Assembly: GCF_001194135.2 (NCBI RefSeq)
Contig: NC_068991.1
Span: forward strand, 35,654,753 to 35,718,752
Reading direction: 5' to 3'
DNA from: Octopus bimaculoides
Taxonomy: Eukaryota
DNA: 64,000 bases
Positions 605 to 61,461 of this stretch are shown here, one piece after another. Numbering within the stretch: the first letter of the stretch is position 1; each line of letters starts with the position of its first letter. The position numbers and the translations under genes were made by a program. The notes beneath the pieces were generated by a model. The model was not told the origin of the DNA. It saw only the letters and a list, made by a program, of their open reading frames with translations, and made no database searches.

Positions 605-945
605 GTAGTGAAAGATTAAGTGATTCAATTGATTTAATAGAGACTGGTTCTTCACTTACATTAAATTATCGATCTTGTGAAGATGAAAGGAAAAGTTAAC
701 TTCGGTGGGATTTGAACTCAAAATGTAAAGAGACGTATCTAAATGCGGCAAAGCGTTTTCTTTGGTTGCCAACCGGTTCTGCTATGTACCACCCTTTTGT
801 AATAATCCTTTCTATTTTAAGCACTTTGCCTGAAATTTTTGGGGAGGGAGCTAGTTGATTACATTGACTCCCGCGCTCAACTGGTTCTTATTTTATCGTT
901 CCCGACAGGATGAAGAGCAACGTCGACCTCGGTACTTTGCAGCAA
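605..945 (-). mobile_element. Two decayed copies of the 'GGCGGCGAGCTGGCAGAA' tRNA-SINE family
   Basis: Both match the near-intact copy at 35524-35737 (e.g. GATGAAAGGAAAAGTTAACTTCGGTGGGATTTGAACTCA; GATGAAGAGCAACGTCGACCTCGG). Confidence 0.75.
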
Positions 946-5280: not shown

Positions 5281-5896
5281 AGGAGGAGAGAGAAGTGGGG
5301 TGAGAAAATATACATTGTCTACAATTCCGTTCTTTTTGACAAATAATAAGAGAGTAACTGGGGAAGAAATATAATAATTCGTTTCTGTTTCTAAACAATT
5401 TACAGATAAAACAAATGTCTGTAGAAATTCTATTACGGGTAGTTAATGTGTTCACACAATGTCGCTTTATACCAGAAAGATATTTTACTGCATCTAAGAT
5501 TAAAAATATGTTACATTAAGAAACTCTGAGCGTAAGCGATATATAAACGGTAGTATCATTTGTCTCCCTTGTGTGTAACACTATGATCTATGCTCTCTAA
5601 ATTATTTACGTGCTAGTTTAGTTGTGATATCACCAATGATGTCAAATATTTATCTTAATTTAATGTATTAAAAACTATTATAAATTAAGGGAAAATATAT
5701 GCGGCTTGTTAACAGACAAAATTACAGGAAATTGACGTCTGTTTAAACTAAAAAGGAAGATCGCTATCACTGGATGTTAAATTTGATATTAGGATGAACA
5801 TTTCGTCTCGTTCTTTACTACCAATCTGTACTTTCATATAATACATATATACATTCATACATATGCATACACAAACAATATATATATATATATATG

Positions 5897-6938
5897 CTAG
5901 CAGAGGCACCCGGCGTTGCTCGGGAATGAAATTGTTGCTTATATACTTGAAGAAAAAAAGGCAAAATATGCTGTATAGAAATTTGAGGACATTCTGTAGA
6001 TGGGCTCTCAGATGAATGATGGCTGGGCGCCTCTCATGAATGGGGAAAATTGAAGATGTGCCAAAAAGCCTCATTGGTACTTGGAAACTTTTACGAAAAT
6101 TAAAATGGGGATTAAATGAAAAAAAATGATTTACGTGAATATCCTCACAAGAGTAATTGAAATAAATGGCNNNNNNNNNNNNNNNNNNNNNNNNNNNNNN
6201 NNNNNNNNNNNNNNNNNNNNNNNNNNNNNNNNNNNNNNNNNNNNNNNNNNNNNNNNNNNNNNNNNNNNNNNNNNNNNNNNNNNNNNNNNNNNNNNNNNNN
6301 NNNNNNNNNNNNNNNNNNNNNNNNNNNNNNNNNNNNNNNNNNNAGAGGTTTGTTGTCGTGTGCGTGTGTATGTGTGAGAGAGTGGTGTGTATGTAGTATT
6401 TACTCTCTCTCTCTCTCTCATACACACTCACACACACACTCACACACAAAATAGAGAGTGAAGCTTTTTGCCGTTGTTACGTCAATACCGGAGCACGCGC
6501 TCGCGCATACACACGTGTGTCTTTGTAAATATGTTTGTATACATTTATGTATGTGTGTGTTTGTAAGAGACAGAGTGTGAGTGAGAGAGAGAGGTTTGTT
6601 GTCGTGTGCGTGTGTATGTGTGAGAGAGTGGTGTGTATGTAGTATTTACTCTCTCTCTCTCTCTCATACACACGAACACACACACTCACACACAAAATAG
6701 AGAGTGAAGCTTTTTGCCGTTGTTACGTCAATACCGGAAGTTGACATTGAGGAACCTTTTTAAAGAAGTGAATCTTAAATATAAAGCAATATTATTTGTT
6801 TTTAATTAAAAAAATCAAATGAAGAGCCTAACATTTATCCGAGGTCAAATTATTCATGCATCACAAGTATGGAAGCATTTGGTGAAGTCGATTTCACGTG
6901 AAAAGCGATTACACACACAACTCTGTTTTATATATAGT
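5897..6938 (-). mobile_element. Non-autonomous Helitron retaining a Rep/helicase fragment
   Basis: Minus-strand 3' end is the CCCGAGCAACGCCGGG hairpin followed by CTAG (5897-5900). The 5' end is CTATATATAAAA near 6937. An internal frame gives RLFGTSSIFPIHERRPAIIHLRAHLQN, matching the Helitron motif WRIFGFPIHER.PAV..L.VHL.N. Contains an N-gap. Confidence 0.75.
6344..6738 (+). repeat. ~149-bp direct repeat, period 246 bp, inside the Helitron
   Basis: 6344-6492 and 6590-6738 are near-identical (AGAGGTTTGTTGTCGTG...GTCAATACCGGA). Confidence 0.9.
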
Positions 6939-7039: not shown

Positions 7040-7800
7040 TGGATGCAGAACCGTATATTCTGTATTGCCAAACATTTGTGGGAAAGTGACACTTTTACTT
7101 ATAATAATCACCAGAACAAACACTTCAAGTGCCATGAAAACAACCTGAACAAGCTACAAGATCGTCTGTGTAGTCATCATCCGCACTATCTGCCACACAG
7201 GATATCGAAATCGTTTTCATCATCATTACTTCGTTCCGTCAACATGACCTCTATACTGCAGAGTTAATCTGTTGCCCTGCTTAAAATCACCACCTAGGTT
7301 TTGAGTGCATTTTGCATTATCTTCTCTGTTTCATACACGGGAGCCCAGGTCTTGGGTTTGGAAATAAATTCTACCTTTCTTGCCACTATACAAGGAGGAC
7401 TTGAAAATGATTTATGTTCTCAGTTTGCTTGTGCGGGTGTAAAAAAATGTTCCTTACTCTGTGGTTTACTGAAAAGCCACTTGCTTATAAGCAGAGCAAT
7501 TCAAAATCCAAATATGGAAATATGAAATAACAGTGAACTGATGATAGCAGTTATTTCAATTCAGATATTTTGATTAAATTTTAGATCTGTCATACTAGCT
7601 ATCGACTTAAAGTCAGTACCCCTTAGCTGTGCGATTAAGTTCTCAGCAATTATATCTTCTTTCTCACACCTTTTCTGTGATTTTTTGTCTACAACGTACT
7701 TTGTCTTATTGTTTATACTTTCTGATGATACATGTTCTGTTGTTGTCTCAGCTTTCTATCAACATTTACTGATTGTTTCTAATTTAGGTACAAGATCAAC
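7040..7800 (-). pseudogene. Decayed ORF ending in an acidic tract and a PHD-like finger (probably transposon-derived)
   Basis: Long frame with scattered stops, then ERSNDDENDFDILCGR / DDDYTDDLVACSGCF / WHLKCL / YYK*KCH. C4HC3 spacing is recoverable across frameshifts. Confidence 0.45.
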
Positions 7801-8935: not shown

Positions 8936-8958
8936 GTTGGTGAGATCTTGCTAATCAG

Positions 8959-9012
<54 letters not shown>

Positions 9013-9448
9013 CGTGATTATATATGTCACGTATTTTCCAATAAATCGTTTCATTACTGGCAATGAAAGATATCCATAAATTTCTTCAAAGTAAAATAAA
9101 CGCATGACTTTTAAGATCCATCCCGCTTCTGAGTTCATTAAGGACTTGAAAAGATATTCCTTTAAGAATCAAAAGCAAATCACGAACTCGCAAGGATGAG
9201 ATTTTACCTACATTCAATAATGTTCAACGTATGGATATCAAATCTATTTGAGTGTGTGGTAGAAACATATGCATGAATGTGCATGTTTCTGAGTGCGTGT
9301 GTTTCAGTATACGTCTGAGTGTGTGTTTCAGTGTTAATATGTCGGAGTTTGTGAATGTGTGTGTTTTTGAATGTGTGTGCATGCATGAATGTACGTATAT
9401 GCACTAAACACATACATAAAAATACATATACACATCCAATCACAGCAC

Positions 9449-9503
<55 letters not shown>

Positions 9504-9919
9504 AAGGGATGCAGATATTTGTATGAGGTTGGATGTAAATATGTTTGTGTGCTTGCGTTTACTGTTTCAACATCTGATGTATTTTTAGAAAGAAATTATT
9601 GATGTTTAAGGGAAGGTTGAAGCAGTGAGGATGGAGAGAAGAAAGAAAAAAAATATGAAGAAAGGGAAAAAAGGGGAGGAAGAAGCATGAAGATGACGTG
9701 GGTTGAAGAAAGGAAATAGGCTGGTGAAAGGATGCAGGGGGTAACAACGAGGTATGAGGGGTAGTAACAACATACAGGGGTTGTTAACAATAATATATAG
9801 GGGTAATGAAATATTAGGGATAACAATAGCCTACACTTCATGAAACTATTTTATATACTTTTAGTGATTCATTTAATTTCGTGCCAATTTGCAGAAAGTT
9901 CAATAATCTCCGAAAAATC

Positions 9920-10608: not shown

Positions 10609-10902
10609 GATGCAGACTTCAGTCTAACGTGCTAAAATTCTGCTCCGGTGTTTCTCGATATTTTACAAATGTAACTAAAAAAAGTAATTTTAATTTTTAT
10701 TTTTATTTCCCTCAAGAACACTTATTGAGCGTTTTGGAGGTCTTCTCCTACTGGGATTTGACAACAATGTCGGTTGTTAAAATATGTTCATTTTAGTCTA
10801 TCGTCGAACGACATAGTGAAAATGGATTTTTTTCCTCAAATCCGCCCCTCAGAAAGATTACTGTAAACATAGCAAAACAACCACAAAACAAAAAAAAAAC
10901 AA

Positions 10903-11599: not shown

Positions 11600-13000
11600 A
11601 ACAACACCTTATATGCGTTTTCATTCCACATCAGGTGCAAACACGAGTAGTGAAAAGATGGCCTTTGCTACCGCCCGCCAAAGACAATCTTGTGATATGG
11701 AGTATATTGCTGAAAGATCACAAGCCTAGCAACATTTCGTTCATCAAATTGGCATCAGTAATCCACAATCAATCACATAGTCTCATTAGAGGAAAAAAAT
11801 AATTTATGTATAGCCAAGAACACTGCAGGCTTTCTCGTAACATACAAACAAGAGTCCGAAACAACCTGGCAAAAATCTAAACGAAATTTCTCAAATTGGG
11901 AAAGGGAGGACATAAAATGTTATGTTACCTCTGAAGCAGAAGATGGAGCAAAAGTACAAGACCATATAGTATGAGCCACACCTACCAATAAGCTGTTTTC
12001 TATATGGTCACCGTCAGAGGCATTGATTGGAAAAATCGGCCACTAGCTAATAGTTACCTTCATAGCACAATAAGAACAGGTAGTAACCGCAAAAGTAACT
12101 TTCGGCAACATGTGGTCGAATGAGACCCCTATGAATATATATATAGGTTCTCATGACCTCACAACGCTAGAAAACAATATCAGGACTGTTCTGTAGAGGG
12201 TACTGAGAAGAAAATCAAATCTCAAAATATATCTAAGATAGTTGACACATGGCAGCAAAATTCATCTAAAAGCTTTCTGCGCAGAAAGCTCCTCTCCTAA
12301 CAATTAAAAACAAAACAGGTCAGTCCTTAAGCAGCAACAGGCACAACACCTGAGTCGGCAAATGAAATTGCACCATTTTAATTATCAGGAGCAAATCACA
12401 AGGTCCCAAAGTTCTAGCCTCATCCAAGGAAAATGAGAGGAGTCACCCACAGCAGCAACAACAGCTAGCACTAAATGACCAGGAAGTGACTCACCCTCCA
12501 TTGTAGCATCATTTCAGTAACTTATGAAGATGGGACGAGACGAATGTGGACTGAGAAAAGCAGTCTTCTTAAAAAACGGAAACTAAAAAAAAAAAATTTA
12601 TAAAATTGTGAGGTAGTGTACATTTCTCCAGGAAAAAAATCATACATCACCAAGGAAAACCAATGTCTTGCGAGGTGGAAGCAGCCTCCGCTCTGAAGAA
12701 GTGAAATTTACAGCCATTCACAAGAAAACTAAAACTCCAATAAAAGTCTTATACAACATACACAAGAAATATTCAGATTAAGTTTGAACTGAAAAGAGAA
12801 GGGATCATAGACAGAATGTTAGAACAAAATTTCGGATAGACTTTAACAAGTGTTATATATTAACAATCCAGAGGACTTACCTAATATAACAAAACAACTC
12901 CTCGTGGAAGATTTTGGAATTATCGTCCATGAACGATACAAGAAAGGAATGCATTGGAAGCATAATCAGAAATGTGGAGCACACTGATCAACTAATAATA
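11600..13000 (+). mobile_element. Heavily decayed copy of the ORF1-like zinc-knuckle family (cf. 39696-40998)
   Basis: Fragments MVTVRGI, VEG.., a remnant knuckle (..GACACATGGCAGCAAAATTC = [G]HMAAK), a KKRKLKKK tract, and a C-terminal IKVLYN..EDLPNIT resembling TVVFYN..DTLPNVV. Confidence 0.4.
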
Positions 13001-15326: not shown

Positions 15327-18300
15327 CATATACATATATATAGTAAAATCGACAATGAAGTACAGTGAACTTGCCATGGGCAATGTGTGTGCATATGAGT
15401 GCTTATGCGCCTGGATGTATATCTTGCACGTGTATGTATGAGTATTAATGTCATTTTTTTTATACATACAGCTGCTCATTATTTTCTATTGCGTTATTGC
15501 TTCTATATCGTATTACCTCATATATTATCTCTGAGGACCTAAGTCTCTTGTCATCCTCAGACTGGGATATCTTCGATAGAATAACCACTTACTATAATGA
15601 AGCACTTTCTAGTAGCGGTTTCAATTATAAATAAATATTTAAAGGATAAGATCCACTTACCACAGGGTAGAGTAAATGCAGAAAGGCGGAAGTAAACTGG
15701 TTTAATCTATCACACATCCAAGAATTTCCTGCACGCATTGTCTGGAATTTTAGATCACGTTTTGTACCCACACATATACGCCATAACCTCTTCAATTCAC
15801 TTGTCCTGTAAGAACAAGATCATTTTCTAAATATTACAGTTTCAATATAGCTTCAAATAATGTAAACACATGTATTTCCCAATCAGCTACCAACTTATCA
15901 GCCTATAATAACTGTCAAGAATCTGTCTTCATTTCAACTCAAAAGAAGTCGTATGCCAAACAACCACAAAAGTTCTGGATGGAGTTAAAAGGAACGTGTA
16001 ACGTATAGTATATCCAACATCGAACACTTTCAAGAGTTACTTCTTTCGTTATCTTTAGTTATTTATGTCAAGGAATAGGGAAAATTCCAACTTTCTCAAA
16101 ATTCCTCTGGAACTGAAAGATCAGGAATAGCTATATCTCCCAATAACACAAGAAAATTTTCTTGAAACTACTCTATACCCCATTTGCCTAGTTGAAAAGT
16201 TCAAGATCGTGAATTAACCTGTGACATCTCCTTAACGGAGATCAATTTTATTGTCTACTTGCCGCCATCGCCGATGGTTCCTCTTAGACATGTTTCAAAA
16301 TTTTTGTTTCCAAATGTTGCAATTAATAAAAATCGGTTTTAGCCAGTTCCTGCTGGCCAAGAGGGTAACCACCTCGAAAGAAGTTGTCTTCTTCGACACC
16401 GCCATAACGCAAGAAGAGTAGCTCCGCAATCTGCAACAAATTTGACCAGCTTTAAACAATAAGAATGGTGGCTCTTGTTTATAGAACTCAGCAAGCAAAT
16501 TGTTTGCTGATGTATATTTGTTGATATTTCCCAAACCAATAGTATATTATCATGTGCACTTTATAAATATCCTAATGGAATCATTCAAGTGTATCTGCTA
16601 TATCATCTGAAAAATCACAAAAATATATCTTGTAAGTGTACGTGTATGACTCTTGACTTTTTTAATATATATATGTGTGTATGTATGTATGTGTGTGTGT
16701 GTGTGTGTGTGTGCGTGCGCGCGCGCGAGTGCGTGTGAGTGTGTGCATGTGTGAATGTGTATACTGTGTGTGCGTTAGGACCCTACATCTCTTCTTTCGG
16801 ACGTGTCCACGACAGGTCTTGAACTAGAACTAGGAACGTATGAAGTACTTATATTGCTGTTCGTAGTTGTCCCCCTTGCAAGCTCAATTAGTGAATAATG
16901 TAATTGAGCAATGTACTGTTATTTCTAATGTTAACCACATCGCAAATAATCAAGTTCATATCTTACATACAGTAAGATTGACCAGGTCTTTGAGGATAAA
17001 AAACAAATTGCCAACTGTTTGTTTTCTTGTACAATGCACATATTTCTGAGTGTGTAAAAGATACTTTATTCAGTAGATAATGTGTTCACATATACAAGGG
17101 CAGAAACAAATAATTGCCTTCAAATTAATCCTTTCATTTGTCCCATGATTCCATTGAGCTGGAAGTATCTACTGCTGGTTTCTACAGTATTAGGTTAAGA
17201 CGGAATATTTCTGGATAGGTGATCAATTTGTTGCTGGTATTTTCCACCGAAGTTCTTCATATACTTTTAAATTAAGGCAAGAAAAGAATGTCCAAATCTG
17301 ATATAAGCGAAGTGCATGTAGGATCCTGACATCATGTTAATTAGGTTCCGATCGATGGATGACAATACTACTTAATGTTCCAGGAAGTAGTTATTTTTTC
17401 CAGTGGAAGAATTGCTTGATGCGGTATTTACCAACCATTTGTAAAACTGATGTTTATATTTTTATATTGATGAAAATCCAACGTAATGTTATAGTGTTAT
17501 GCAGTGATGCGAATATTCTTTAAAGGTAGATGAAACGGATGAAGAAAAAAGGGACAAGTGAGGGGAAAAGAATCATACTTAAATGTAGAATAAATATTAG
17601 GTTAAAGAAAGAGTGACACACTAACATATTTATATGGGAAATATACTGAAAAAGGATATAATGAAGAGAAGAGCAAACTCACATAGGTGATATGGAATGA
17701 AAAAGCATACACAAATATAAAGTGTCTTGTATAGAGAAAGGGTAAGAAGAAAGAAAACCAAAAAGAGATGCTTATACATTTAATTAGATGCAATGAAGTG
17801 GAGTAAAAATAGAAAGGACAAGTCATACATATTGAGAGATCAAATAAGAAAGAAATGGAAACGGAACAAAAATGAAAACAATAACGAAAGAATAAGTGAA
17901 TGAATGAAATACAATACAAAAACAAACAAACAAGAAGAAAGGTTGCAGTTTTTATGAACAGAGAAAGTGAGGCTGTGCCACTTCTCTCACAACTAGTAAA
18001 GATAGCTGTAGACAACACCTAGGGAATGTATGAATACATGGAGAGATGTATATCAACAAAAAGATAATATACATGTACAGATTGGAGAGCGTACCTGCCA
18101 GGGGAGGGAATCATCTATAAGCATAAATAGGTTGTTATAGAAAGAAATATATGTAGACCCGGTTGCTGTTTACATAAAAAGTGGATAAATATACATAAAC
18201 ATAAATTAATCCATAAAGTCAGAGAAGTGTGTGATAAGAAACTGAGAGAAAGAGAGTGGGTGACGGAGAGGGAGAAAGAAAAGAGGGGGAGAAAGAAGAG

Positions 18301-27496: not shown

Positions 27497-27690
27497 ATTG
27501 GTTTCAGATTTCGGTACAATATTGGGGAAGGAGTAAGTCGATCACATCGACTCCAGTGCTCAACTGCTACATATTTTATGGACCTCGAAAGGATGAAAGG
27601 CAAAGTCGACTTCGGCTCAGAACACGAAGACGGACGAAATTCCGCTAATCATTTTGCCCGGCGTGCTAACGATTCCGCCAGCTCTCCGCC
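27497..27690 (-). mobile_element. tRNA-SINE copy
   Basis: GACCTCGAAAGGATGAAAGGCAAAGTCGACTTCGGC..GATTCCGCCAGCTCTCCGCC. Confidence 0.85.
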
Positions 27691-27849
27691 TTACGTAATG
27701 TCAAATATATTGTTTGTAGATTTTCATCAGAACTTATCGGATGTTAAAGACTTTACGATGAATTAAAACGTGATGGAATTTTATTCATCACAGTTTCCCA
27801 AAGAAAATCCAGCGCCAAATAAGATTAGGGCACCCACCCATTCCCGCTG

Positions 27850-35523: not shown

Positions 35524-35737
35524 CTTTTCTACTCTAGGCACAAGGCCGGAAATTTTTGGGGAGGGGAACAGTCGATTAGATCGACCCCAGTACGCAACTG
35601 GTACTTAATTTATCGATCCCGAAAGGATGAAAGGCAAAGTCGACCTCGGCAGAATTTGAACTCTGAACGTAAAGACAGACGAAATACCGCTAAGCATTTC
35701 GCCCGGCGTGCTAACGTTTCTGCCAGATTGCCGCCTT
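35524..35737 (-). mobile_element. Near-intact tRNA-derived SINE with 17-bp target-site duplication
   Basis: Minus strand GGCGGCAATCTGGCAGAAACGTTAGCACGCCGGGCG..GAGTTCAAATTCTGCC..GTCGACTTTGCCTTTCATCC..CTGGGGTCGAT. TSD AGATTTATATTTAAATA at 35507-35523 and 35738-35754. Confidence 0.92.
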
Positions 35738-38373: not shown

Positions 38374-39444
38374 GTCTGCTTATATATGTGTGTGTTTGTG
38401 TATATATGTCTGTACACATACATATTTGCATGAATTTCTTATAGTCTTGCATTATATATGATTAAATTGACTTCAAATTGTAGTTATTAAACATCTAATG
38501 TCACTGGTGTCTGAAATAAATAGAGTCTCAGTGAGTTTTTATACTAAGCCATTCGAGGCTAATTTATTCCTATTTATCTATAAATACCACTTAACAGTAT
38601 TTTCTAAATGGAAATCTGCGATAGACAACAGTTTTTCTTTTTACAAGGAAGTTTCTAAACTGCTTATTATCATGATAGCTGGTACAATCTTCTGCAGATT
38701 CTAGCTTTTATGGAAAACACTTCAGAAGCAGTACATAAGCCCACCAGTGATGAAATATACATTTCAAATAAGGTTAGGTTCACATCAATACTTGGCATAC
38801 CCTGACAGTTACATTAAATGTAAATGATTTGATTGAAACCTGACGATACGAAAGTAACTTCTTTTCACATACAGATTTGTTATATCAATGATAACAGAAT
38901 ATTTACCGAAGAGTTTCGTTAAATTATTTGAAGTCTCTTCATCTTCGAATTGAACACCTAAGTAAGTTTAGATCTCTATTCAATCTTTACGTCAACATTT
39001 TGGTAAACCAATATATATATATCTGTAAAAATGTTGAAACATTTGAAACAGTTGAAACATTCCTGTCACAACCTGGGACCTTGAAGGCTGATTAAATAGA
39101 AGAAAGTATACTAGTCCTTTAATATATGATATTCAATATTTCATCTATTCAATAAGAAAATCAATACTTCATTTCATTTCACTATATATACTATATATTC
39201 TTTATCCTACATTAATATTATAAGAATATAAATAAAACATAAAAAACAGAGTTGGAAATCCTTTGAATAATATATATATATATATAAAGCATTTGTATAC
39301 TGTCAACTCAATGTGACAGTCCCAATAAGGGAATCATACTGCTGCTATTTAGCCCTAGGAAGCTGGACCGCTTCCTGTCGGCCTTGACACATTTCCTGTG
39401 TCTTTATATTTGCGAGGGGGGAGACAAGCACCCCCACCCAGCTC

Positions 39445-39506
39445 AGTGTGCATTCAGGGACATGCTTCTGAGTCATTGCTCGTCATCAGCCTGAAGTAGC
39501 AACACT
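39445..39506 (-). ncRNA. Type I hammerhead ribozyme fold
   Basis: AGTGTTGCTACTTCAGG-CTGATGA-C-GAG CAATGA CTC-A-GAAG-CATG-TC|CCTGAATGCACACT. Stem I TTCAGG/CCTGAA is perfect and extends, the stem III CATG is palindromic, and there is a GUC cleavage triplet. This copy has G at position 15.1. Confidence 0.7.
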
Positions 39507-39695
39507 ATTTCTCTTTATTATAGGCACCAAGGCCTCTACATAGAGGGGGACATAACACGGACAAACAAAACAAAACGTGGGGTACATAAAACGAATGATG
39601 AATAAAATGAATAACTTACAGTGAGGTGATGAAATGGCTTACGAGTCCCCCAAAACTCGCAGCTTCATTTAACAGTTTTCTTATACAGTTTATGG

Positions 39696-40998
39696 TCATT
39701 TTTTTTCTACAATAATTATATGTGGTCTCAGCTCCTCTGTCGTTACTACATTTGGCAGGGTGTCGTAACCCACATACAATCCACTTGCTTTAAAATTATA
39801 CGGGTGTATTTGTTGCAGTCTCTTCATTATATGTTTTTCCACCACTATAGCTTTTTCTTGTTCTTCAAACGTTCCAGGTTCCAGTTTAAGTTTTACTAAT
39901 CCCTTTATTTTAGCAATCGTCTTCTCCAACTCTAAATTCTTGTTGTAAAAAACCACTGTTCTGATATTTTAATATTCTACTTTTCCAGCTACCTTTCCTT
40001 CCATCCTCGCTACATCCTTCTGGTTTATCATCGTTTCCCACCAATTTATCCACTTCTCCCTTCTTGTTAAAACTTTTTCATGCTCTGTGTCTTGGGTTCG
40101 ATTCTCAGTTTCATCTTTTTCAGTTTCCTTTTCGTTCTCTGTCTTCTTTTTCTTTCCCCCTCTCTTTTTTGGGGTGGGGGGTGGGGGTGGGGTCTTTGGC
40201 GGCGATTCAGTCCGCATAGGTTTTCTATCTGTTCCTTCTAAACATTCCTCACTCTCCACTATCTCCGCCTGTTGTTCGACCTCTACCATATCATCTTCAC
40301 AGATCTCTGTTTCTACCACTTGGACCTCTCTATGGGGACACATTACCTGTATATGTCCCCTACTTCCACATCTATAGCATATGGGTGGCCTCCCCTCTAC
40401 CACAAACCTCAGTCGGGTGTCATCGGGGAGTACCAACTCCTCTGCGAGGTTACGCAGGTCAGACAGGGTTATATGGGTTAGAATTTCCAACCCCAATCCC
40501 CATCAGTTGATCTTTTTAGACCTCTCCACTTTTATGATTTCCACCTCTTCTTTGCAATTATAGATTACTGCTGCCACCAGCCATTTTAAATCTATTTCCA
40601 GTGGTACTTTTCCGATTCTTATCCTTGCGGCTATTCTGCCGTAATATACTGGCAAAAGAGCCCACTTCTCCGTTCTTAGAGGTATGGTAGAATATCTCTT
40701 CGCATCTGCCTCGCTCCCAAAACACACCTTTACACTTTCGCACCTCCTTCCTCTCGTGTAGAACACCATTTCTTCCCCAATTCCGCTCAAGCAACTCTCC
40801 ATTGCCTCAACCTACGCTACATCAACTTTCCCCAATGCTACGTTTAGTGTCTCATACGTTATAATTCCTTTTTCAGCGCTTTCCATCACTTTCTTGGGCG
40901 GACCAACCCGTAGGGCGTCCCCCTCCCACTTCAACAACCTAAAGTGCCTCTTGCCTCTTCATGCTTGTAACTTCCACTCCAACCTCCCTCATCTCCAT
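39696..40998 (-). pseudogene. L1/Tx1-type ORF1 (gag-like, CCHC zinc knuckle), interrupted by stops and a frameshift
   Basis: Joined ORFs: ..YTRGRRCESVKVCF..LPVYYGRIAARIRIGKVPLEIDLKWLVAAV..VVEGRPPICYRCGSRGHIQVMCP, followed by Pro/Lys/Glu-rich linkers and a C-terminal domain ending at stop 39696. Confidence 0.8.
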
Positions 40999-41489
40999 GT
41001 CGCCGGCCGGCCGACACCTGCCAGCCGCCGCCGCGCAACTAGCAGTCACTACAAACGTCACAGAACAANNNNNNNNNNNNNNNNNNNNNNNNNNNNNNNN
41101 NNNNNNNNNNNNNNNNNNNNNNNNNNNNNNNNNNNNNNNNNNNNNNNNNNNNNNNNNNNNNNNNNNNNNNNNNNNNNNNNNNNNNNNNNNNNNNNNNNNN
41201 TAGCAGCAATTTCAAAACTTCAAACCAACAACAGCCACTTCAACAATTTTTCAACACTCTCAATTACGACATTCATCAACTTACGCTCTCCGCTCACAAA
41301 ATCACAACATAACTCCAAAAAACACGACTATCCAACTCGGCTGAAGTAGCAACACTAGCTGGTTGAAAATGCATGTCAAACCCTCGCAAATATATATATT
41401 TTTTGTGAAAACAGATTCACTGATTACAAAAATTAGAAATGATCTAATCATAAATCTCACAGAGAGAATTAATCAGCAGTGTTACGATG

Positions 41490-41550
41490 AAGCATTTGTA
41501 TACTGTCAACTCAATGAGACAGTCCCAATAAGGGACTGTCACATTGAGTC
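41490..41550. repeat. Copy of the element's terminal 45 nt fused to a perfect hairpin
   Basis: AGCATTTGTATACTGTCAACTCAATG(A/T)GACAGTCCCAATAAGGGA repeats 39288-39332. ACTCAATGAGACAGTCCC-AATAA-GGGACTGTCACATTGAGT is an 18-bp inverted repeat with 1 mismatch. Confidence 0.9.
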
Positions 41551-42802
41551 TTTATTATACTTTGCCTACTTAAGTAAAGGATAAGTGAAGGGTATTTCTT
41601 TAAAAAGTTATTCATGAAAGAGCAGCTTACTCTCTAGAAAGAGATCAGTCCTTCAATTCTTAACTGTTATAATCTGGACATAATTCTAGTTCTAAGACTT
41701 ATAAGACTTCGGAGTTCGTTAAAAATAATGGACAATACCTGAGTATACTCACTGTGATCAATGTAGTGATAGTTGTTTGGAAGAATTCCACTAAATGTAC
41801 AATAAGACCATTCGGGGAATTTGACATTGTCCTTCATACTTATAATTCAATTTTTAACTTATTTCAAAAAGAGCTGGAGCCATGCTGCAAAAAGATCAAG
41901 AAACTTATCGTTGCAGATAACCTGAACACCGAAAATATTTTAGAGAGATAAATATGTAGTGCAGAGTACTACAGAACATAAAAAAGACTTCAGAAGCAGA
42001 CGCATAAAAAGCAGTAGCTATGGAATCCATGATAAATGGTGATTAAGTAAACATATGTGAGAGAAATTATCTGGCTGTAATATTGATGGAGGTTATAAAT
42101 AAGGTTCGGCCGGATTTGCACATTACCAATATGTCTCGAACGGGAATGAAATAGTTGGAAGGAGATGAGAACGGAAATGATAAATTTGGCATGTAATTAT
42201 ATAATCGTAAAATACAAAAAAAAAAAGCAACATTTGCAAAGAGAAGAAATATATCAAGAACCAGAAGGAAAAATAGAAGAAAGAATACTTAAAGAAAGGA
42301 ATGATAAAAATGAGCCTCAGGGCTTTGACTGACATGTAATTTGAGTAGGAATTGTAATTTGAGTAGGAACTAATCTCCGAGTGGTAGAGAAAATCGCAAT
42401 TCTTTGAAATTAAAATGAAATTATATAGCGAACATGTTTATGCTGGAATGCAAAAGAATCACGTATAGAGAAACATAACATCAACGAACAGACACAAAAT
42501 AATCCAGAAAAAGCTTTTTCTTGATCAATATTGTGTTTAACTGAAATATATCAGAGGCATTATATCTCACAGAAGTGAGGATATTTTGGCAGTCATTTCC
42601 AGAAATGTTATCCCAATTAACAAATAAGAGTTTCGGATTACCTTTTACATACTATTTTCCCCACCAAATATTTGATATTAGATTTCCTTAATTTTAAAGA
42701 TAACTTGATCGCAACTCCAATATTTATATTATGTCTTCCATGGATCTAACTGTTAGCGACGTAGTATTGTAGTTGTTACTGATATTATTGTTATAACAGA
42801 AC

Positions 42803-58816: not shown

Positions 58817-60639
58817 AATATTTCACACATGCGCGCGGGTACATACACACACGTACACACATATGAAAGTTCTTGGTGGATCTAGTGTCTTACTGTATGA
58901 TTGAAAGCTATATCAACCCTAGAACTGGACGTCACTTCATAGTGTCGATGGTCTCATTCTTTCCATCTAGAGTAAAGACCTAATAATTTAACAGCTTAAG
59001 GTTCAGAGCCCCACGGCTTTTCATTACCTTACTAGGATCCTCATAGATCTTCGAGGTATTGATGTATCCACAACGTGGATGTTGATGTATTTAGAAAGTA
59101 CTTAATGCACATTCGTATTTGAGATATCAGATGAATCAATACCACGATAAGAAACGCAAATAAGGCTGGTGTTGGCGAAGCCAGCAATGCCCTTTAACGA
59201 AACCAGATATAGAGAGAAGCCGTCGAAATGACGTGATTAAACTAACACTGACACCAATAGTAGTGTTTCATCATGGCTACAGCCTCTAGTTGAAACAGGT
59301 AAATGTGAAAGTAAAATATATATGTGTATTCATATATGTATTTGTACATATATTGGTTAAGGTGTTGGACAAGCAATCATTGCGCCATCATTTCGAATCC
59401 TCGACAAAATGAAAATCAAAATTAAAAATCAAATCTTAAAAATTAGAAGTTAAAATGTTGAAAATTAGCAGTCAAAAAATTAGAACAATTCTTTTTAAAT
59501 GTAACACTATAAGTATATATAAAATAATATGGAATAAATTATTTGGTGAAATATTATATATGATAATATATCAATATTAAAATGTAACGTATTATATAAA
59601 GCTATGAAATTAAAAAATATATAAAGTTTCTACCTAAACGTGTGATGTTCTGTGTGTGTGTAGGTAAATGTCTTGTGATAATACATGAAATTACAATAAA
59701 ATATGGATATAAATTATACGAAAATATAAAAGTAATAAAACGTAAAGACATATGTCTATGTATGTACATAGCTGTAAGTCCTTACATGTGCGCACCTAAA
59801 TCCTCCCATACATCTACATATACACTCATCCACACTCACACATCCACGTGCATGGGTGCTCAGTTCTATATAAATTGATAAATTTGAACAAAAATATATA
59901 AATTAACAGAATAAAATAAAAATTAATAAAATTTTGTAATTCATGAAGATTCATAATATTTCTTGCTGACATTGTAGACAATGTGGCTGAAATATTAGAA
60001 AATATTTACTGGTGTCTGGCCAGCTCCCAGAAGCTTCACTTTCAGCGTTTAGACAGGTGCTAGGGTTCAGTGAGCTCTTCAGAATAAGTCACCTTTCTCC
60101 TTTATGGAGCGCACACCTTCTGTTGCCGCTGGTATAGGGCTTACTTTTTTTTCGAGCCATCCAGTTGATTGTTGGTGGACCGCTCTTTTAAATCCTATAT
60201 ATTGCTGGAAAGCACTTAGCTGTTGCATTTGTTAATTTATTTAATTCATTTTTTATATACTTTTAATTCTTTAATTCTCCATTTTTTAATCTTTAGTAAT
60301 TTAAAATTTTAAAATTTTCATATTTTAATTAAAATTTTTAGTGGTTCAATTCTTAATTTTTTATTTATGATGAATTTATTTTTAATTTTTATTTACGCTT
60401 TTAGTTCTTAATTTTTTACTTTTTTAATTTTATTTTAAATTTATGTGTTTTGATTTATTCTTACTAAACTCAACCTTCACGCATGTACAACAGTAACTTG
60501 ATCAAAATCTCATAATTAAGTCTAGCAGAGTTGTTCTCCTTCAAAAGTAAATGGTTTGGTGATACACCGGTGGTACTTTTCCCTGTAAGGGACATACACA
60601 ACAACTGATGAATGGTGGTCGAAAATCGGATGAAGCTGT

Positions 60640-60816
60640 TCTATATTTAAGAGACGAGGAATTATGCATATCATTTACATTATTTACATTTGACGGATAT
60701 TTCTCCTCATCTTGTTTGTTGTTAAGACAACGTTTCGGCTGATATATCCTCTAGCCTTCATCAGGTGTCTTGGGGAAATTTCGAACCTGGGTTCTCATTC
60801 CTAAGGTATTTTTCGA

Positions 60817-61255: not shown

Positions 61256-61461
61256 ATTGGTTTCAAGTTTTGGCACAGGGCCAGCAATTTCGAAAGAAAG
61301 GATAAGTGGTTTACATCGATCAACTAGTACTTATTTTATAGACCTCGAAAGAAATGAAAGGCAAAGTGAATCTCAGTGGAATTTGAACTCAGAACGTAAA
61401 GACGGACGAAATGCCGCTAAACATTTTGCCTGGTATGCTAACGATTCTGCCAGCTCGTCGC
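61256..61461 (-). mobile_element. tRNA-SINE copy
   Basis: GACCTCGAAAGAAATGAAAGGCAAAGTG..GGAATTTGAACTCAGAACGTAAAGACGGACG..GATTCTGCCAGCTCGTCGC. Confidence 0.85.

Follow-up and report, generated by a model that had tools for sequence, protein, structure and literature searches.

The 64-kb stretch of Octopus bimaculoides DNA that was analysed, referred to here as the window, contained on its minus strand a broken open reading frame (ORF1, 39696..41068) with a zinc knuckle and, beyond its stop codon, AATAAA (39514-39519), a hammerhead motif, TATAAA and a (TA)n tract, all of which had been listed in the original prediction for this DNA. The frame ran from the edge of an assembly gap (41068) to a TGA at 39696-39698 and comprised an N-terminal part, two RRM-like domains, a CCHC knuckle, a charged linker and a conserved C-terminal domain (39699-39956). 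It was disrupted by four stops (40812-14, 40503-05 and 39969-71 in frame, plus one in the N-terminal frame) and by one frameshift near 40925, and the start codon was either lost or within the gap. The knuckle (CYRCGSRGHIQVMC, 40338-40379) matched Pfam zf-CCHC with an E value of 3.1e-5, and a YGR..IRIGKVP segment (40602-40646) formed part of the second RRM-like domain. An AlphaFold model had a mean pLDDT of 91.7, and its Foldseek matches were tandem-RRM proteins (probability 0.99-1.0). The predicted L1/Tx1-type character of the protein was borne out by the zf-CCHC match and the tandem-RRM model, ORF1p of the window being of type I, i.e., a protein with RRM domain(s) and a CCHC knuckle (PMC5203782). 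Neither a reverse transcriptase (RT) nor an endonuclease was present 3' of ORF1, and ORF2 of a relative, used as query, had no match anywhere in the 64-kb window, in agreement with the prediction of an ORF1-only element.

The assembly gap (41069..41200, 132 N) fell at the boundary of the 5' UTR and the start codon. Its flanks belonged to one element with their order kept, the 5' UTR on one side being homologous to, and aligning with, the 5' UTRs of relatives at loci L002 and L008, and the flank on the other side beginning at about codon 1 of ORF1. The window codon aligned with the ATG of relatives was TGT. The corresponding region measured 92-95 nt in relatives as opposed to 71 nt plus 132 N in the window, so the missing sequence probably amounts to no more than about 21-24 nt and the gap is probably over-sized.

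The LINE unit (5' UTR, broken ORF1 and 3' UTR) extended over 39508..41340 on the minus strand, a length of 1833 nt as assembled with the 132-N gap counted in, and lay between two exact copies of a 17-nt sequence, the upstream copy (TAGTGTTGCTACTTCAG) at 41341..41357 and the downstream copy at 39491..39507. The latter also provides the 5' strand of hammerhead stem I and of a long closing helix. The 3' UTR (39508..39695) ended ...GAGGCCTTGGTGCCTATAATAAAGAGAAA without poly(A), and the unit terminated at AATAAAGAGAAA (39508), which is the terminus of full-length relatives. Since the exact copies flank precisely a unit with the 3' end of full-length relatives, we read the 17-nt repeat as a target-site duplication (TSD), matching at 17 of 17 positions in the window, rather than as the element's own terminus, as had been proposed; the flanks of the relatives are unrelated.

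The LINE family and its ORF1-only copies

Exhaustive protein searching, which was needed because word-indexed searches returned only 1-2 matches, yielded 314 relatives of ORF1 at E<=1e-3. The named relatives that were looked up were all octopod (Octopus bimaculoides, O. sinensis, O. vulgaris and Argonauta hians), and, judged by sequence, the window ORF1 is a member of an octopod-specific LINE family of the L1/Tx1 group. Placement in this group was based on the ORF1 type together with the zf-RVT domain and the closest PDB structure of a relative's ORF2. In a distant full-length member, L005, ORF1 was followed by an ORF2 with Exo_endo_phos, RVT_1 and zf-RVT domains; the same three domains were noted in degraded form in ORF2 of L003, and in L001 the N-terminus of an APE-type ORF2 began 35 nt past the ORF1 stop. 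The L005 ORF2 aligned end to end with human L1 ORF2p (E 4e-42, the best PDB match), whereas its match to R2 (about 1e-19) was in the RT region alone. Thus, full-length relatives at some distance (L003 and L005) are ordinary two-ORF APE+RT LINEs, an outcome that the original prediction had named as one that would count against it. Intact ORF1 relatives of 379-453 amino acids occurred among annotated proteins (P0005, P0007 and P0050); two further relatives, P0001 and P0004, had no contig on record.

The inserted unit is an ORF1-only, HAL1-like derivative of this LINE family. ORF1-only copies were present in the window, in L004, in L009, in L006 (5'-truncated), in L007 (two copies) and in L008 (two copies), those of L007 and L008 forming head-to-tail arrays apart from the hammerhead repeat. 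In addition, L009 carried at 8954-9053 a 5'-truncated retrocopy of about 50 nt with its own 16-bp TSD and 12 nt of read-through sequence.

The 3' end of the window unit aligned with the 3' ends of L004, L003 and L005. Identity between the 3' UTRs of the window and of O. vulgaris L004 was 90% over 48 nt, and global alignment of the last 60 nt gave 98% over 52 aligned columns; directly past the unit similarity fell to 65%. Both units ended ...ATAATAAAGAGAAA and were followed by TSDs with 17/17 and 18/20 matching bases, respectively. Full-length L005 ended ...GAATAAAGAAATG, followed by an exact 16-bp TSD (16/16), and L003 ended ...CAATAAAAAGAAT within (ATT)n, the terminal motif GCC(C/T)T(T/G)GTG(G/C)C..AATAAA being common to the window unit and both full-length elements. 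The ORF1 proteins of subfamilies that share the 98% identical 3' end were only 28% identical. At L009 the TSD of the ORF1-only unit was short and imperfect (8/10), a point against the reading of nested insertion.

The host repeat and its hammerhead motif

Removal of the LINE unit restored a continuous, structured repeat of about 350 nt, composed of two parts. Part R (39284..39490, minus strand) reached from the hammerhead core to the 3' end of the repeat, which adjoins the (TA)n microsatellite (39271..39286) that forms its 3' boundary; the two R copies of L009 each shared about 69% identity with it, and R of L006 was also related. Part x (41358..41486, minus strand), located after R and ahead of the insertion site within the tandem unit, was 78% identical to x of L009 over 59 nt, and the R end was contiguous with x in the window as in L009. 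Upstream of x lay the last 49 nt of a 5'-truncated R copy (41487..41535, minus strand), identical to 39284-39332 at 47 of 49 positions, and an inverted partial copy of the R end (41532..41560, minus strand), which forms a palindrome with a 29-bp stem together with that upstream copy. The same inverted-copy layout was noted in L009 at 5763-5900. Within one locus R copies were 92.5% (L009) or 47/49 (window) identical, compared with about 69% between loci, and the tandem extended over about 1.14 units in the window and 1.65 in L009.

With the unit and one TSD copy removed, the monomer measured 353 nt in the window and 341 nt in L009, with GC contents of 42% and 39%. Its minimum free energy (MFE) was -133.7 kcal/mol in the window against -86.4+-5.9 for shuffled sequences (z -8.05), and -100.4 against -75.4+-5.5 (z -4.5) in L009. 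All 73 pairs of a consensus fold were kept in both monomers, and both sides had changed in 17 of them. One long-range helix was formed by an arm at 41381..41394 (TATATTTGCGAGGG) and a partner at 39405..39418 (CCCTCGCAAATATA), both on the minus strand, and was retained in L009 with different sequence. The partner arm contains the predicted TATAAA, which was indeed present (within 39400-39413) but was not conserved in the O. sinensis relative. The host repeat is thus a non-coding, strongly self-paired, hammerhead-bearing unit of about 350 nt made of R and x, and its anatomy is that of a non-LTR retrozyme or of a flank of a Penelope-like element (PLE).

Three other interpretations of these sequences were rejected. 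The 14-nt inverted repeat is not the end of a MITE with TA duplications; its arms belong to the long helix that L009 keeps with different sequence. Nor is the 49-nt direct repeat a LINE/SINE 3' tail or the TSD of an insertion of 2.2 kb; it represents the terminus of one unit of the tandem. Finally, the DNA past 39508 is not unrelated host DNA, as L009, L006 and L004 show that the flanks are a recurring repeat.

The hammerhead motif (39453..39495, minus strand, 43 nt), the features of which were compared with those in PMC4209133, was of type I, with cleavage predicted after the C at 39459. It consisted of stem I UUCAGG/CCUGAA (6 bp), a CUGAUGA box, a 3-bp stem II, GAA, stem III and GUC, stem III being a single base pair capped by the palindromic loop CAUG (CUAG in L009). 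When scored for the type-I core (C3U4G5A6N7G8A9, G12A13A14, A15.1-U16.1 and H17), every conserved position was kept except 15.1, which was G instead of A; in addition, the 10.1/11.1 pair was a C.A mismatch. With four stops and one frameshift in ORF1 and G at 15.1 in the hammerhead, the window copy is dead.

The isolated hammerhead fold was not the thermodynamic optimum, and Rfam hammerhead models did not match the window motif at E<=10. An initial verdict that the motif was spurious had been reached with stem III taken as GCAU/AUGC (-8.2 against an MFE of -23.4 kcal/mol, pair probabilities near 0), and this verdict was withdrawn because L009 gave the register with a 1-bp helix III and because Rfam proved insensitive. 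Rfam models also missed or under-scored other loci with the same motif class, so the negative result carries little weight and, more generally, motifs of this class can go unannotated by curated models. A metagenome scan for the hammerhead pattern (at least 120 loci, many of them possibly chance) was used solely for this calibration of Rfam. At other loci the core was kept and stem I showed compensatory changes, with double changes at three pairs, and 79.5% of hammerhead pair cells were paired in register compared with 25-52% when partners were slid. The downstream copy in L009 had the full core while the upstream copy read CUGAUGC, and L004 carried a U3-A8 core variant of a kind already documented (PMC4209133). 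The prediction of a metazoan-type hammerhead downstream of the ORF was upheld; it is a real metazoan type-I motif, and one that belongs to the host repeat rather than to the LINE unit.

Recurrent nesting at one site of the repeat

At three other loci, L009 and L006 (O. sinensis) and L004 (O. vulgaris), ORF1-only units were found at the homologous site of the repeat and in the same orientation as the repeat, so the junction between ORF and hammerhead recurs outside the window. The insertion point is within the 5' strand of stem I, and all four nested units were within about 10 nt of one repeat position. Relative to a CAAC motif the junction was offset by 0-8 nt between loci, and the duplicated sequences were near-identical inside each locus and different between loci. 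These locus-specific duplications, together with the shift of the junction by a few nucleotides, point to separate insertion events. For L009, the one locus checked for synteny with the window, similarity outside the composite was confined to dispersed repeats and was nowhere collinear, and the idea that the two are orthologous loci was rejected on this ground. An uninterrupted x-A-R unit, i.e., a full empty target, was not seen among the loci examined, and insert-free R was found only in part, as the upstream copy of L009 (about 5900-6125) and as the 49 nt in the window.

The comparison loci were located by way of annotated proteins, a route that may be biased towards copies lying in transcribed repeats, and only four nested loci are known. 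On such grounds the LINE derivative might insert anywhere, its hammerhead-repeat neighbourhood being a coincidence or an artefact of the search. We consider this very improbable. Four insertions lay within about 10 nt of a unit of about 350 nt and in the same orientation, the probability of three further matches under random placement within the unit is well below 1e-3, and the window itself was chosen independently of annotation.

The explanation to which we give somewhat better than even credence is that a HAL1-like non-autonomous LINE inserts site-preferentially into hammerhead repeats. The LINE unit would have arrived by target-primed reverse transcription, with the 17-bp duplication as a result, and RT and endonuclease would have come in trans from an autonomous relative with both ORFs, able to recognise the conserved 3' end ...GCCTTGGTGCCTATAATAAAGAGAAA, a form of 'stringent' template recognition. 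The preferred target of the LINE lineage would be a short segment of the repeat, around ...CAAC(N)1-4|..., much as Tx-group LINEs have specific targets of their own, and read-through transcripts into the repeat, by annealing at another repeat copy, may strengthen the preference. Against this explanation, the relatives examined included no autonomous partner that shares the target or has a closely related ORF1, and full-length L003 and L005 occupied other targets.

The original prediction had proposed that the parts constitute a single chimeric class of non-autonomous element, with ends defined by the ribozyme and mobilisation by PLE machinery. Locus-specific TSDs, shifting junctions, the LINE-type 3' end and the restoration of the repeat on excision all speak against it. 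A more detailed version treats the whole composite, in the order x, A box, ORF1 unit, A box and R, as one non-autonomous element of retrozyme or PLE type with ORF1 as cargo. Its transcript would span two hammerheads and, after cleavage and perhaps circularisation, would be reinserted at (TA)n, with PLE machinery or some other RT carrying out the last step. This version is in our judgement unlikely, although several observations are in its favour. The architecture was found in three species and L009 lacked synteny to the window; R copies were far more alike within a locus than between loci, as in repeats made by insertion; an inverted 5'-truncated copy beside the upstream repeat and (TA)n boundaries are as in the PLEs of PMC8557442; and the 17-bp duplication keeps both the closing helix and hammerhead stem I formable with the cargo present. 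However, A boxes derived from one capture should diverge within a locus by at least about 30%, as the loci do, yet they matched at 17/17, 18/20 and 8/10 positions within loci while differing strongly between them, and the junction position shifted by a few nucleotides. The 98% identical LINE 3' end, conserved despite 28% ORF1 identity, argues that this end and not the R end is the functional terminus, and ORF1-only copies as well as the tiny retrocopy occur without R. Furthermore, no PLE RT was seen in or beside the composite in the window, L004, L006 or L009, the window has no upstream hammerhead, the upstream core in L009 reads CUGAUGC, and the window core has G at 15.1.

Locus L006, in which a 5'-truncated ORF1 unit and a complete R lie between (TA)n tracts on both sides, would also fit joint movement of ORF1 and R and is a point in favour of the single-element model. 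It also suits co-mobilisation by LINE machinery, in which insertion into the repeat is followed by 3' transduction past a weak AATAAA into R and ORF1 plus R is copied to new TA-rich sites, so that some copies would move as one unit with no role for a PLE or a ribozyme. Such transduction is established for L1; the signal in L006 is mutated to AATACA, and the 12 nt carried by the small L009 retrocopy prove read-through beyond the LINE end to at least that extent. Nevertheless, the window, L009 and L004 have an upstream x and A box, which 3' transduction could not supply, and L006 is the only locus that fits. The 100 nt or so upstream of its unit, while not recognisably x, contain a motif like the x arm (TATATTTTGCATTTGCGG). 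Co-mobilisation is given a low probability. Identity tables drawn up by segment for the LINE and R parts were too noisy for separate trees.

Beyond site-preferential insertion, it is conceivable, though we think it quite doubtful, that octopod hammerhead repeats and the L1/Tx1-type LINE lineage form a working partnership rather than a case of parasitism. In such a partnership a constitutively transcribed repeat would give a promoter and ribozyme processing, and a hammerhead-delimited, possibly circular RNA of about 2.2 kb would encode an RNA chaperone. If true, LINE machinery would be the long-sought mobiliser of metazoan retrozymes.

Comparison with known systems

Association of a LINE with hammerhead repeats appears to be undescribed, and in the literature no description was found of a LINE that nests repeatedly at one spot of a hammerhead repeat. 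The retrotransposon that mobilises metazoan retrozymes is an open question for which the candidates are 'LINEs or PLEs' (PMC7229834), and a LINE family physically tied to retrozyme-like repeats offers a concrete test system, long-read assemblies and brain RNA-seq being already available for the genomes concerned. ORF1-only 'half' LINEs have been documented mainly for mammalian L1; here they occur in a tail-less octopod lineage with type-I ORF1, the diversification of which spans at least three Octopus species.

HAL1, which 'encodes only ORF1p', is described as having 'originated independently several times' (PMC5753468). Like mammalian HAL1, the octopod unit is a non-autonomous LINE derivative with only 5' UTR, ORF1 and 3' UTR that was retrotransposed with TSDs. 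In contrast with HAL1, the ORF1 of which is of the Transposase_22 type, the octopod ORF1 is of type I (RRM + CCHC) and comes from an invertebrate LINE of the L1/Tx1 group; its unit has no poly(A) tail, the conserved 3' end pointing to stringent recognition, and copies often occur either in head-to-tail arrays or nested within another repeat at a single site.

In Xenopus, Tx1L resides inside Tx1D, i.e., a LINE at a fixed site of another repeated element. The octopod LINE likewise sits at one site of a repeated target in the same orientation, at four loci with locus-specific TSDs. Within the L1 clade, the Tx-group LINEs combine RRM/CCHC variants of ORF1 with 'a target-specific insertion' (PMC3747384, PMC5203782), and the likeness of the octopod family to Tx1 is one of layout and ORF1 type. 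Unlike in the Tx group, the octopod target is a hammerhead-bearing repeat, the inserted copies have no ORF2 and the two full-length relatives seen use other targets.

The host repeat itself resembles metazoan non-LTR retrozymes (Cervera and de la Pena 2020, PMC7229834) in its type-I hammerhead, short tandem unit (150-450 bp), GC content below 50%, high degree of self-pairing, lack of coding capacity and weak helix III with a palindromic loop. It differs from them in having only 1.1-1.6 units per locus and, in the window copy, a 1.8-kb LINE insert and a core substitution. In PLEs, an inverted 5'-truncated copy by the upstream repeat and a preference for (TA)n have been described (PMC8557442), as has a hammerhead in the flanking direct repeat (PMC8557442, PMC4209133). 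The host repeat shares with PLE pLTRs this flanking-repeat hammerhead, the partial tandem, the inverted 5'-truncated upstream copy and the (TA)n preference, whereas no ORF for RT or GIY-YIG was present in or beside the composite in the window, L004, L006 or L009, the stem lengths (6 and 4 bp) were canonical for metazoan hammerheads rather than those of a 'min-HHR', and the internal region was a LINE ORF1 unit with a TSD of its own.

ORF1 and its LINE family

The ORF1 reading frame runs on the minus strand of the window from 41068, at the edge of an assembly gap, to a TGA at 39696-39698 and is broken by in-frame stops at 40812-14, 40503-05 and 39969-71, by one more in the N-terminal frame and by a frameshift near 40925. 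The sole Pfam match in its product was to zf-CCHC (E 3.1e-5), for the knuckle CYRCGSRGHIQVMC at 40338-40379. With 30 relatives as input, AlphaFold gave a model of the protein up to and including the knuckle that had a mean pLDDT of 91.7 and resembled tandem two-RRM proteins (Hsh49, NONO, nucleolin RBD1-2 and hnRNP A1 UP1) with probabilities of 0.99-1.0. The predicted YGR..IRIGKVP segment was present and located in the second of these RRM-like domains. By the definition of type I ORF1p as RRM plus CCHC, a combination that occurs in plant L1 and Tx1-like elements (PMC5203782), the window product qualifies as type I.

Above the gap lie 140 nt of 5' UTR, homologous to the 5' UTRs of two other O. 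bimaculoides copies (L002 and L008), and below the gap the sequence starts at about codon 1 of ORF1 (CSVTFVVTASCAAAAGR in the window, MEKAPVGGLSYAATTGR in L002). Both sides are collinear with relatives, and the window codon aligned to their ATG is TGT. From a common 5' UTR motif to the S-Y/C-A-A codons, relatives had 92-95 nt; the window had 71 nt and 132 N there, and the true missing length is therefore probably about 21-24 nt. A stop in the context TAT TAA AA was noted in frame where the charged linker meets the conserved C-terminal domain, both in the window (39966-39974, after GKVEY) and in L002 (about 10745-10753, after NFVTY). The annotated protein A0A0L8GKK6 (P0001) terminates exactly at the residue before this stop; the remaining relatives read across the position without interruption. 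The stop of the window and L002 could be an ancestral nonsense mutation held in common or a site of programmed read-through.

A word-indexed protein search with the window ORF1 returned one relative only, an O. bimaculoides 'CCHC-type domain-containing protein', and an exhaustive search returned 314 (E<=1e-3); the named relatives that were looked up were all octopod (O. bimaculoides, O. sinensis, O. vulgaris and Argonauta hians). Complete members are 379-623 aa long and have a common layout, with a C-terminal domain that is the counterpart of the last 86 codons of the window ORF1. No family member contained an RT within the same protein. Directly after ORF1 at an Argonauta locus (L005) was an ORF in which Exo_endo_phos, RVT_1 and zf-RVT were recognised. 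It aligned over its full length with human LINE-1 ORF2p (E 4e-42), as opposed to over the RT part only with R2 proteins (~1e-19). A degraded version of this ORF2 follows ORF1 in O. sinensis (L003), and in L001, a contig from ENA, the N-terminus of an APE-type ORF2 begins 35 nt past the ORF1 stop. This downstream context and the ORF2p match identify the family, at the level of sequence, as ORF1 of an L1/Tx1-group LINE. In some annotated octopus proteins, such as P0117 (A0A0L8I7X9) and P0127, an ORF1 fragment is joined to WD40 or LDL-receptor domains; these fusions are probably gene-model chimeras that arose from TE copies inside genes.

Ends of the LINE unit and ORF1-only copies

The full-length LINE of L005 ended in ...GTGGCGAATAAAGAAATG and lay between perfectly matching 16-bp target-site duplicates. 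The corresponding end in L003 was ...GTGGCCAATAAAAAGAAT, within (ATT)n; tracts of (ATT)n on either side of this degraded full-length LINE (9720-9775 and 15344-15379) were also noted, a pattern which suggests that the L003 subfamily targets microsatellites. The ORF1-only copies of the window and of an O. vulgaris locus (L004) ended in ...GTGCCTATAATAAAGAGAAA, at the position aligned with the full-length ends. The last 60 nt of these two copies were 98% identical over 52 aligned columns (terminal sequence, last ~60 nt, GAGGCCTTGGTGCCTATAATAAAGAGAAA), as opposed to 28% identity only between their ORF1 proteins. An end so conserved points to stringent template recognition, with RT and endonuclease presumably supplied in trans by an autonomous two-ORF relative. 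Right after the window LINE end were the 17 nt TAGTGTTGCTACTTCAG (39491-39507), repeated right before the 5' UTR (41341-41357), and an 18/20 duplication occupied both equivalent places in L004. From the aligned 3' end and the 17-nt duplication on both sides, the window element is therefore an ORF1-only retrocopy with its own ends, 39508-41340, that was retrotransposed without ORF2.

Other ORF1-only copies were noted at two O. sinensis loci (L009 and L006). Head-to-tail arrays of two such copies were present in O. bimaculoides (L008, 5462-7400) and on a Logan contig (L007, 740-3539), where 3' ends AATAAAGAAAACG and AATAAAGGAAGG, respectively, adjoin the next 5' UTR with no hammerhead repeat between the arrayed copies. 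By eye, two further short insertions (6425-6680 and 7105-7520) appeared to break the 5'-truncated copy of L006, and RefSeq model XP_036360159.1 splices out around one of them.

The hammerhead and its host repeat

Rfam hammerhead models gave no match on the window even at E<=10, and one register of the fold was thermodynamically poor; comparison with L009 gave the correct register. As a control, Rfam 15 hammerhead models likewise missed the CUGAUGA-N-GAAACUAGUC class on metagenome contigs (L010, L020, L032, L061 and L083), the exception being a sub-threshold Hammerhead_3 match of 28 bits in 54-nt tandem arrays, while inverted pairs of the class gave weak miRNA-like hairpins instead of any hammerhead match.

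The motif reads UUCAGG-CUGAUGA-C GAG CAAUGA CUC A-GAA-G-CAUG-U-C/CCUGAA in the window and ...CCAGA-CUGAUGA-AGAGCAACUACCCU-GAAA-CUAG-UC/UCUGG in L009 (slash, cleavage site). This architecture is that of most metazoan type-I hammerheads, which have a helix I of 6 bp, a helix II of 4 bp and a helix III of 1-2 bp with a small palindromic loop and are active as dimers (PMC4209133). Among four copies, 79.5% of pair cells were paired in register compared with 25-52% for slid partners, three stem I pairs were changed on both sides, and the loop changed from CUAG to CAUG while remaining palindromic throughout. Stem I of the L006 hammerhead is of entirely different sequence (CACAC/GUGUG), and all 4 bp of its helix II are matched. 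Because just four or five sequences were available, covariation is supportive but not conclusive. The L004 core (11652-11715), UUGAUAA, is best read from its sequence as the U3-A8 covariant of C3-G8 reported for Cercyon PLE hammerheads (PMC4209133) and not as random decay. With G at 15.1 and C.A at 10.1/11.1, the window copy may lack activity. Two more CTGATGA...GAAA matches, on the minus (60733-60775) and plus (60605-60624) strands, were noted about 130 nt apart beside (ATT)n, in or beside a repeat common to the window and L009 (12043-12483; 84-89%). The minus-strand match, CUGAUGA-AGGCU..AGCC-GAAAC-GUU-GUC, in which stem I was not evident, could be a PLE-type minimal hammerhead.

Without the LINE unit and one copy of its target-site duplication (A box), the flanking sequences form a continuous repeat unit, comprising the post-cleavage part of R (hammerhead core to repeat 3' end), x (the part just before the insertion site), the A box and the hammerhead. 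The hammerhead thus belongs to a structured repeat distinct from the LINE unit. This repeat was 353 nt long with 42% GC in the window and 341 nt long with 39% GC in L009, with an MFE of -133.7 kcal/mol compared with -86.4+-5.9 for shuffles (z -8.05) in the former and of -100.4 compared with -75.4+-5.5 (z -4.5) in the latter. Their joint fold had 73 pairs, all retained in both units and 17 changed on both sides, and included a long helix between the post-cleavage strand and the end of x plus the A box. The predicted TATAAA box was present in one arm of this helix but is not conserved as sequence.

Ahead of the window unit came the terminal 49 nt of a further unit (identity 47/49) together with a partial copy in inverted orientation. 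Ahead of the L009 unit came a complete R, which shares 92.5% identity with the R downstream, and an inverted piece made up of R-end and x. The repeat 3' boundary was (TA)n at two loci (window and L006) and TA-rich sequence in L009, with (TA)n ~35 nt further; in L004, the repeat lay between two (TA)n tracts and R was cut off after ~48 nt. The host repeat is like non-LTR retrozymes in the length and GC content of its unit, in its self-pairing and in having a type-I hammerhead (PMC7229834), and like PLEs in its partial tandem arrangement, inverted upstream copy and (TA)n preference (PMC8557442); no PLE RT was seen near it. A dispersed SINE-like repeat of ~200 nt was also noted, in at least four copies in the window (651-929, 27524-27692, 35526-35726 and 61261-61459) and three in L009 (70-82% identity).

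Recurrent nesting of the LINE unit in the repeat

At four loci (window, L009, L006 and L004), ORF1-only units occupied the homologous repeat position and had the same orientation, and no synteny was found between L009 and the window outside the composite of x, A box, ORF1 unit, A box and R. The ORF1-hammerhead association is therefore real, and chance is a highly improbable explanation. The original prediction, the listed sequence features of which were confirmed with refined coordinates, was of a single class with ORF1 cargo moved by PLE machinery via ribozyme-defined ends. Its ORF1-only unit, hammerhead and junction shared across loci held; the single PLE-mobilised class did not. A-box duplicates matched within loci (17/17 in the window, 18/20 in L004 and 8/10 in L009) but were barely alignable between loci, whereas the repeats were ~69% identical. 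Since two A boxes from one old capture are expected to differ from each other no less than the loci do, this match favours repeated insertion, as do the slight shifts in junction position (CAACCAGC/TAG... in the window, CAACGCC/TGC... in L004, CCAACA/GC... in L009 and ...A/ACCAGTG in L006), the conserved functional terminus, which is the LINE 3' end, and the ORF1-only copies that lack the repeat.

A small retrocopy (~50 nt) of the LINE 3' end at L009 8954-9053, truncated at its 5' side and located at an unrelated site with its own 16-bp TSD (CTTGAACTTGCACCAA), also speaks against a chimeric element. Past the LINE end it continues for 12 nt into A-box sequence (CTAGCAAAGACT), and this read-through shows LINE-type mobilisation of transcripts from a nested copy. 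The main copy, which lies 900 bp upstream, has an identical stretch of 26 nt across the LINE 3' end and the read-through bases. A chimeric PLE or retrozyme element with ORF1 cargo is accordingly considered unlikely, even though R pairs within loci resemble repeats made at insertion and no full empty target was seen at the loci examined. The 5'-truncated ORF1 plus R of L006, between two (TA)n tracts, would also fit joint movement of ORF1 and R, either in such an element or by 3' transduction; LINE-driven co-mobilisation of the two is, in our estimate, a similarly unlikely account of the association. Site-preferential nesting of the LINE unit into the hammerhead repeat is the reading we favour, with moderate confidence, and annealing of read-through RNA at another repeat copy could add specificity.

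The window element would then be, on balance, a HAL1-like element derived from a LINE with type I ORF1 and homing to hammerhead repeats. In design, the octopod ORF1-only unit comes closest to HAL1 of mammals, described as 'a non-autonomous derivative of L1 [that] encodes only ORF1p' (PMC5753468). Its nesting at one repeat site resembles the target-specific insertion by which the Tx group is recognised among L1-clade LINEs (PMC3747384).
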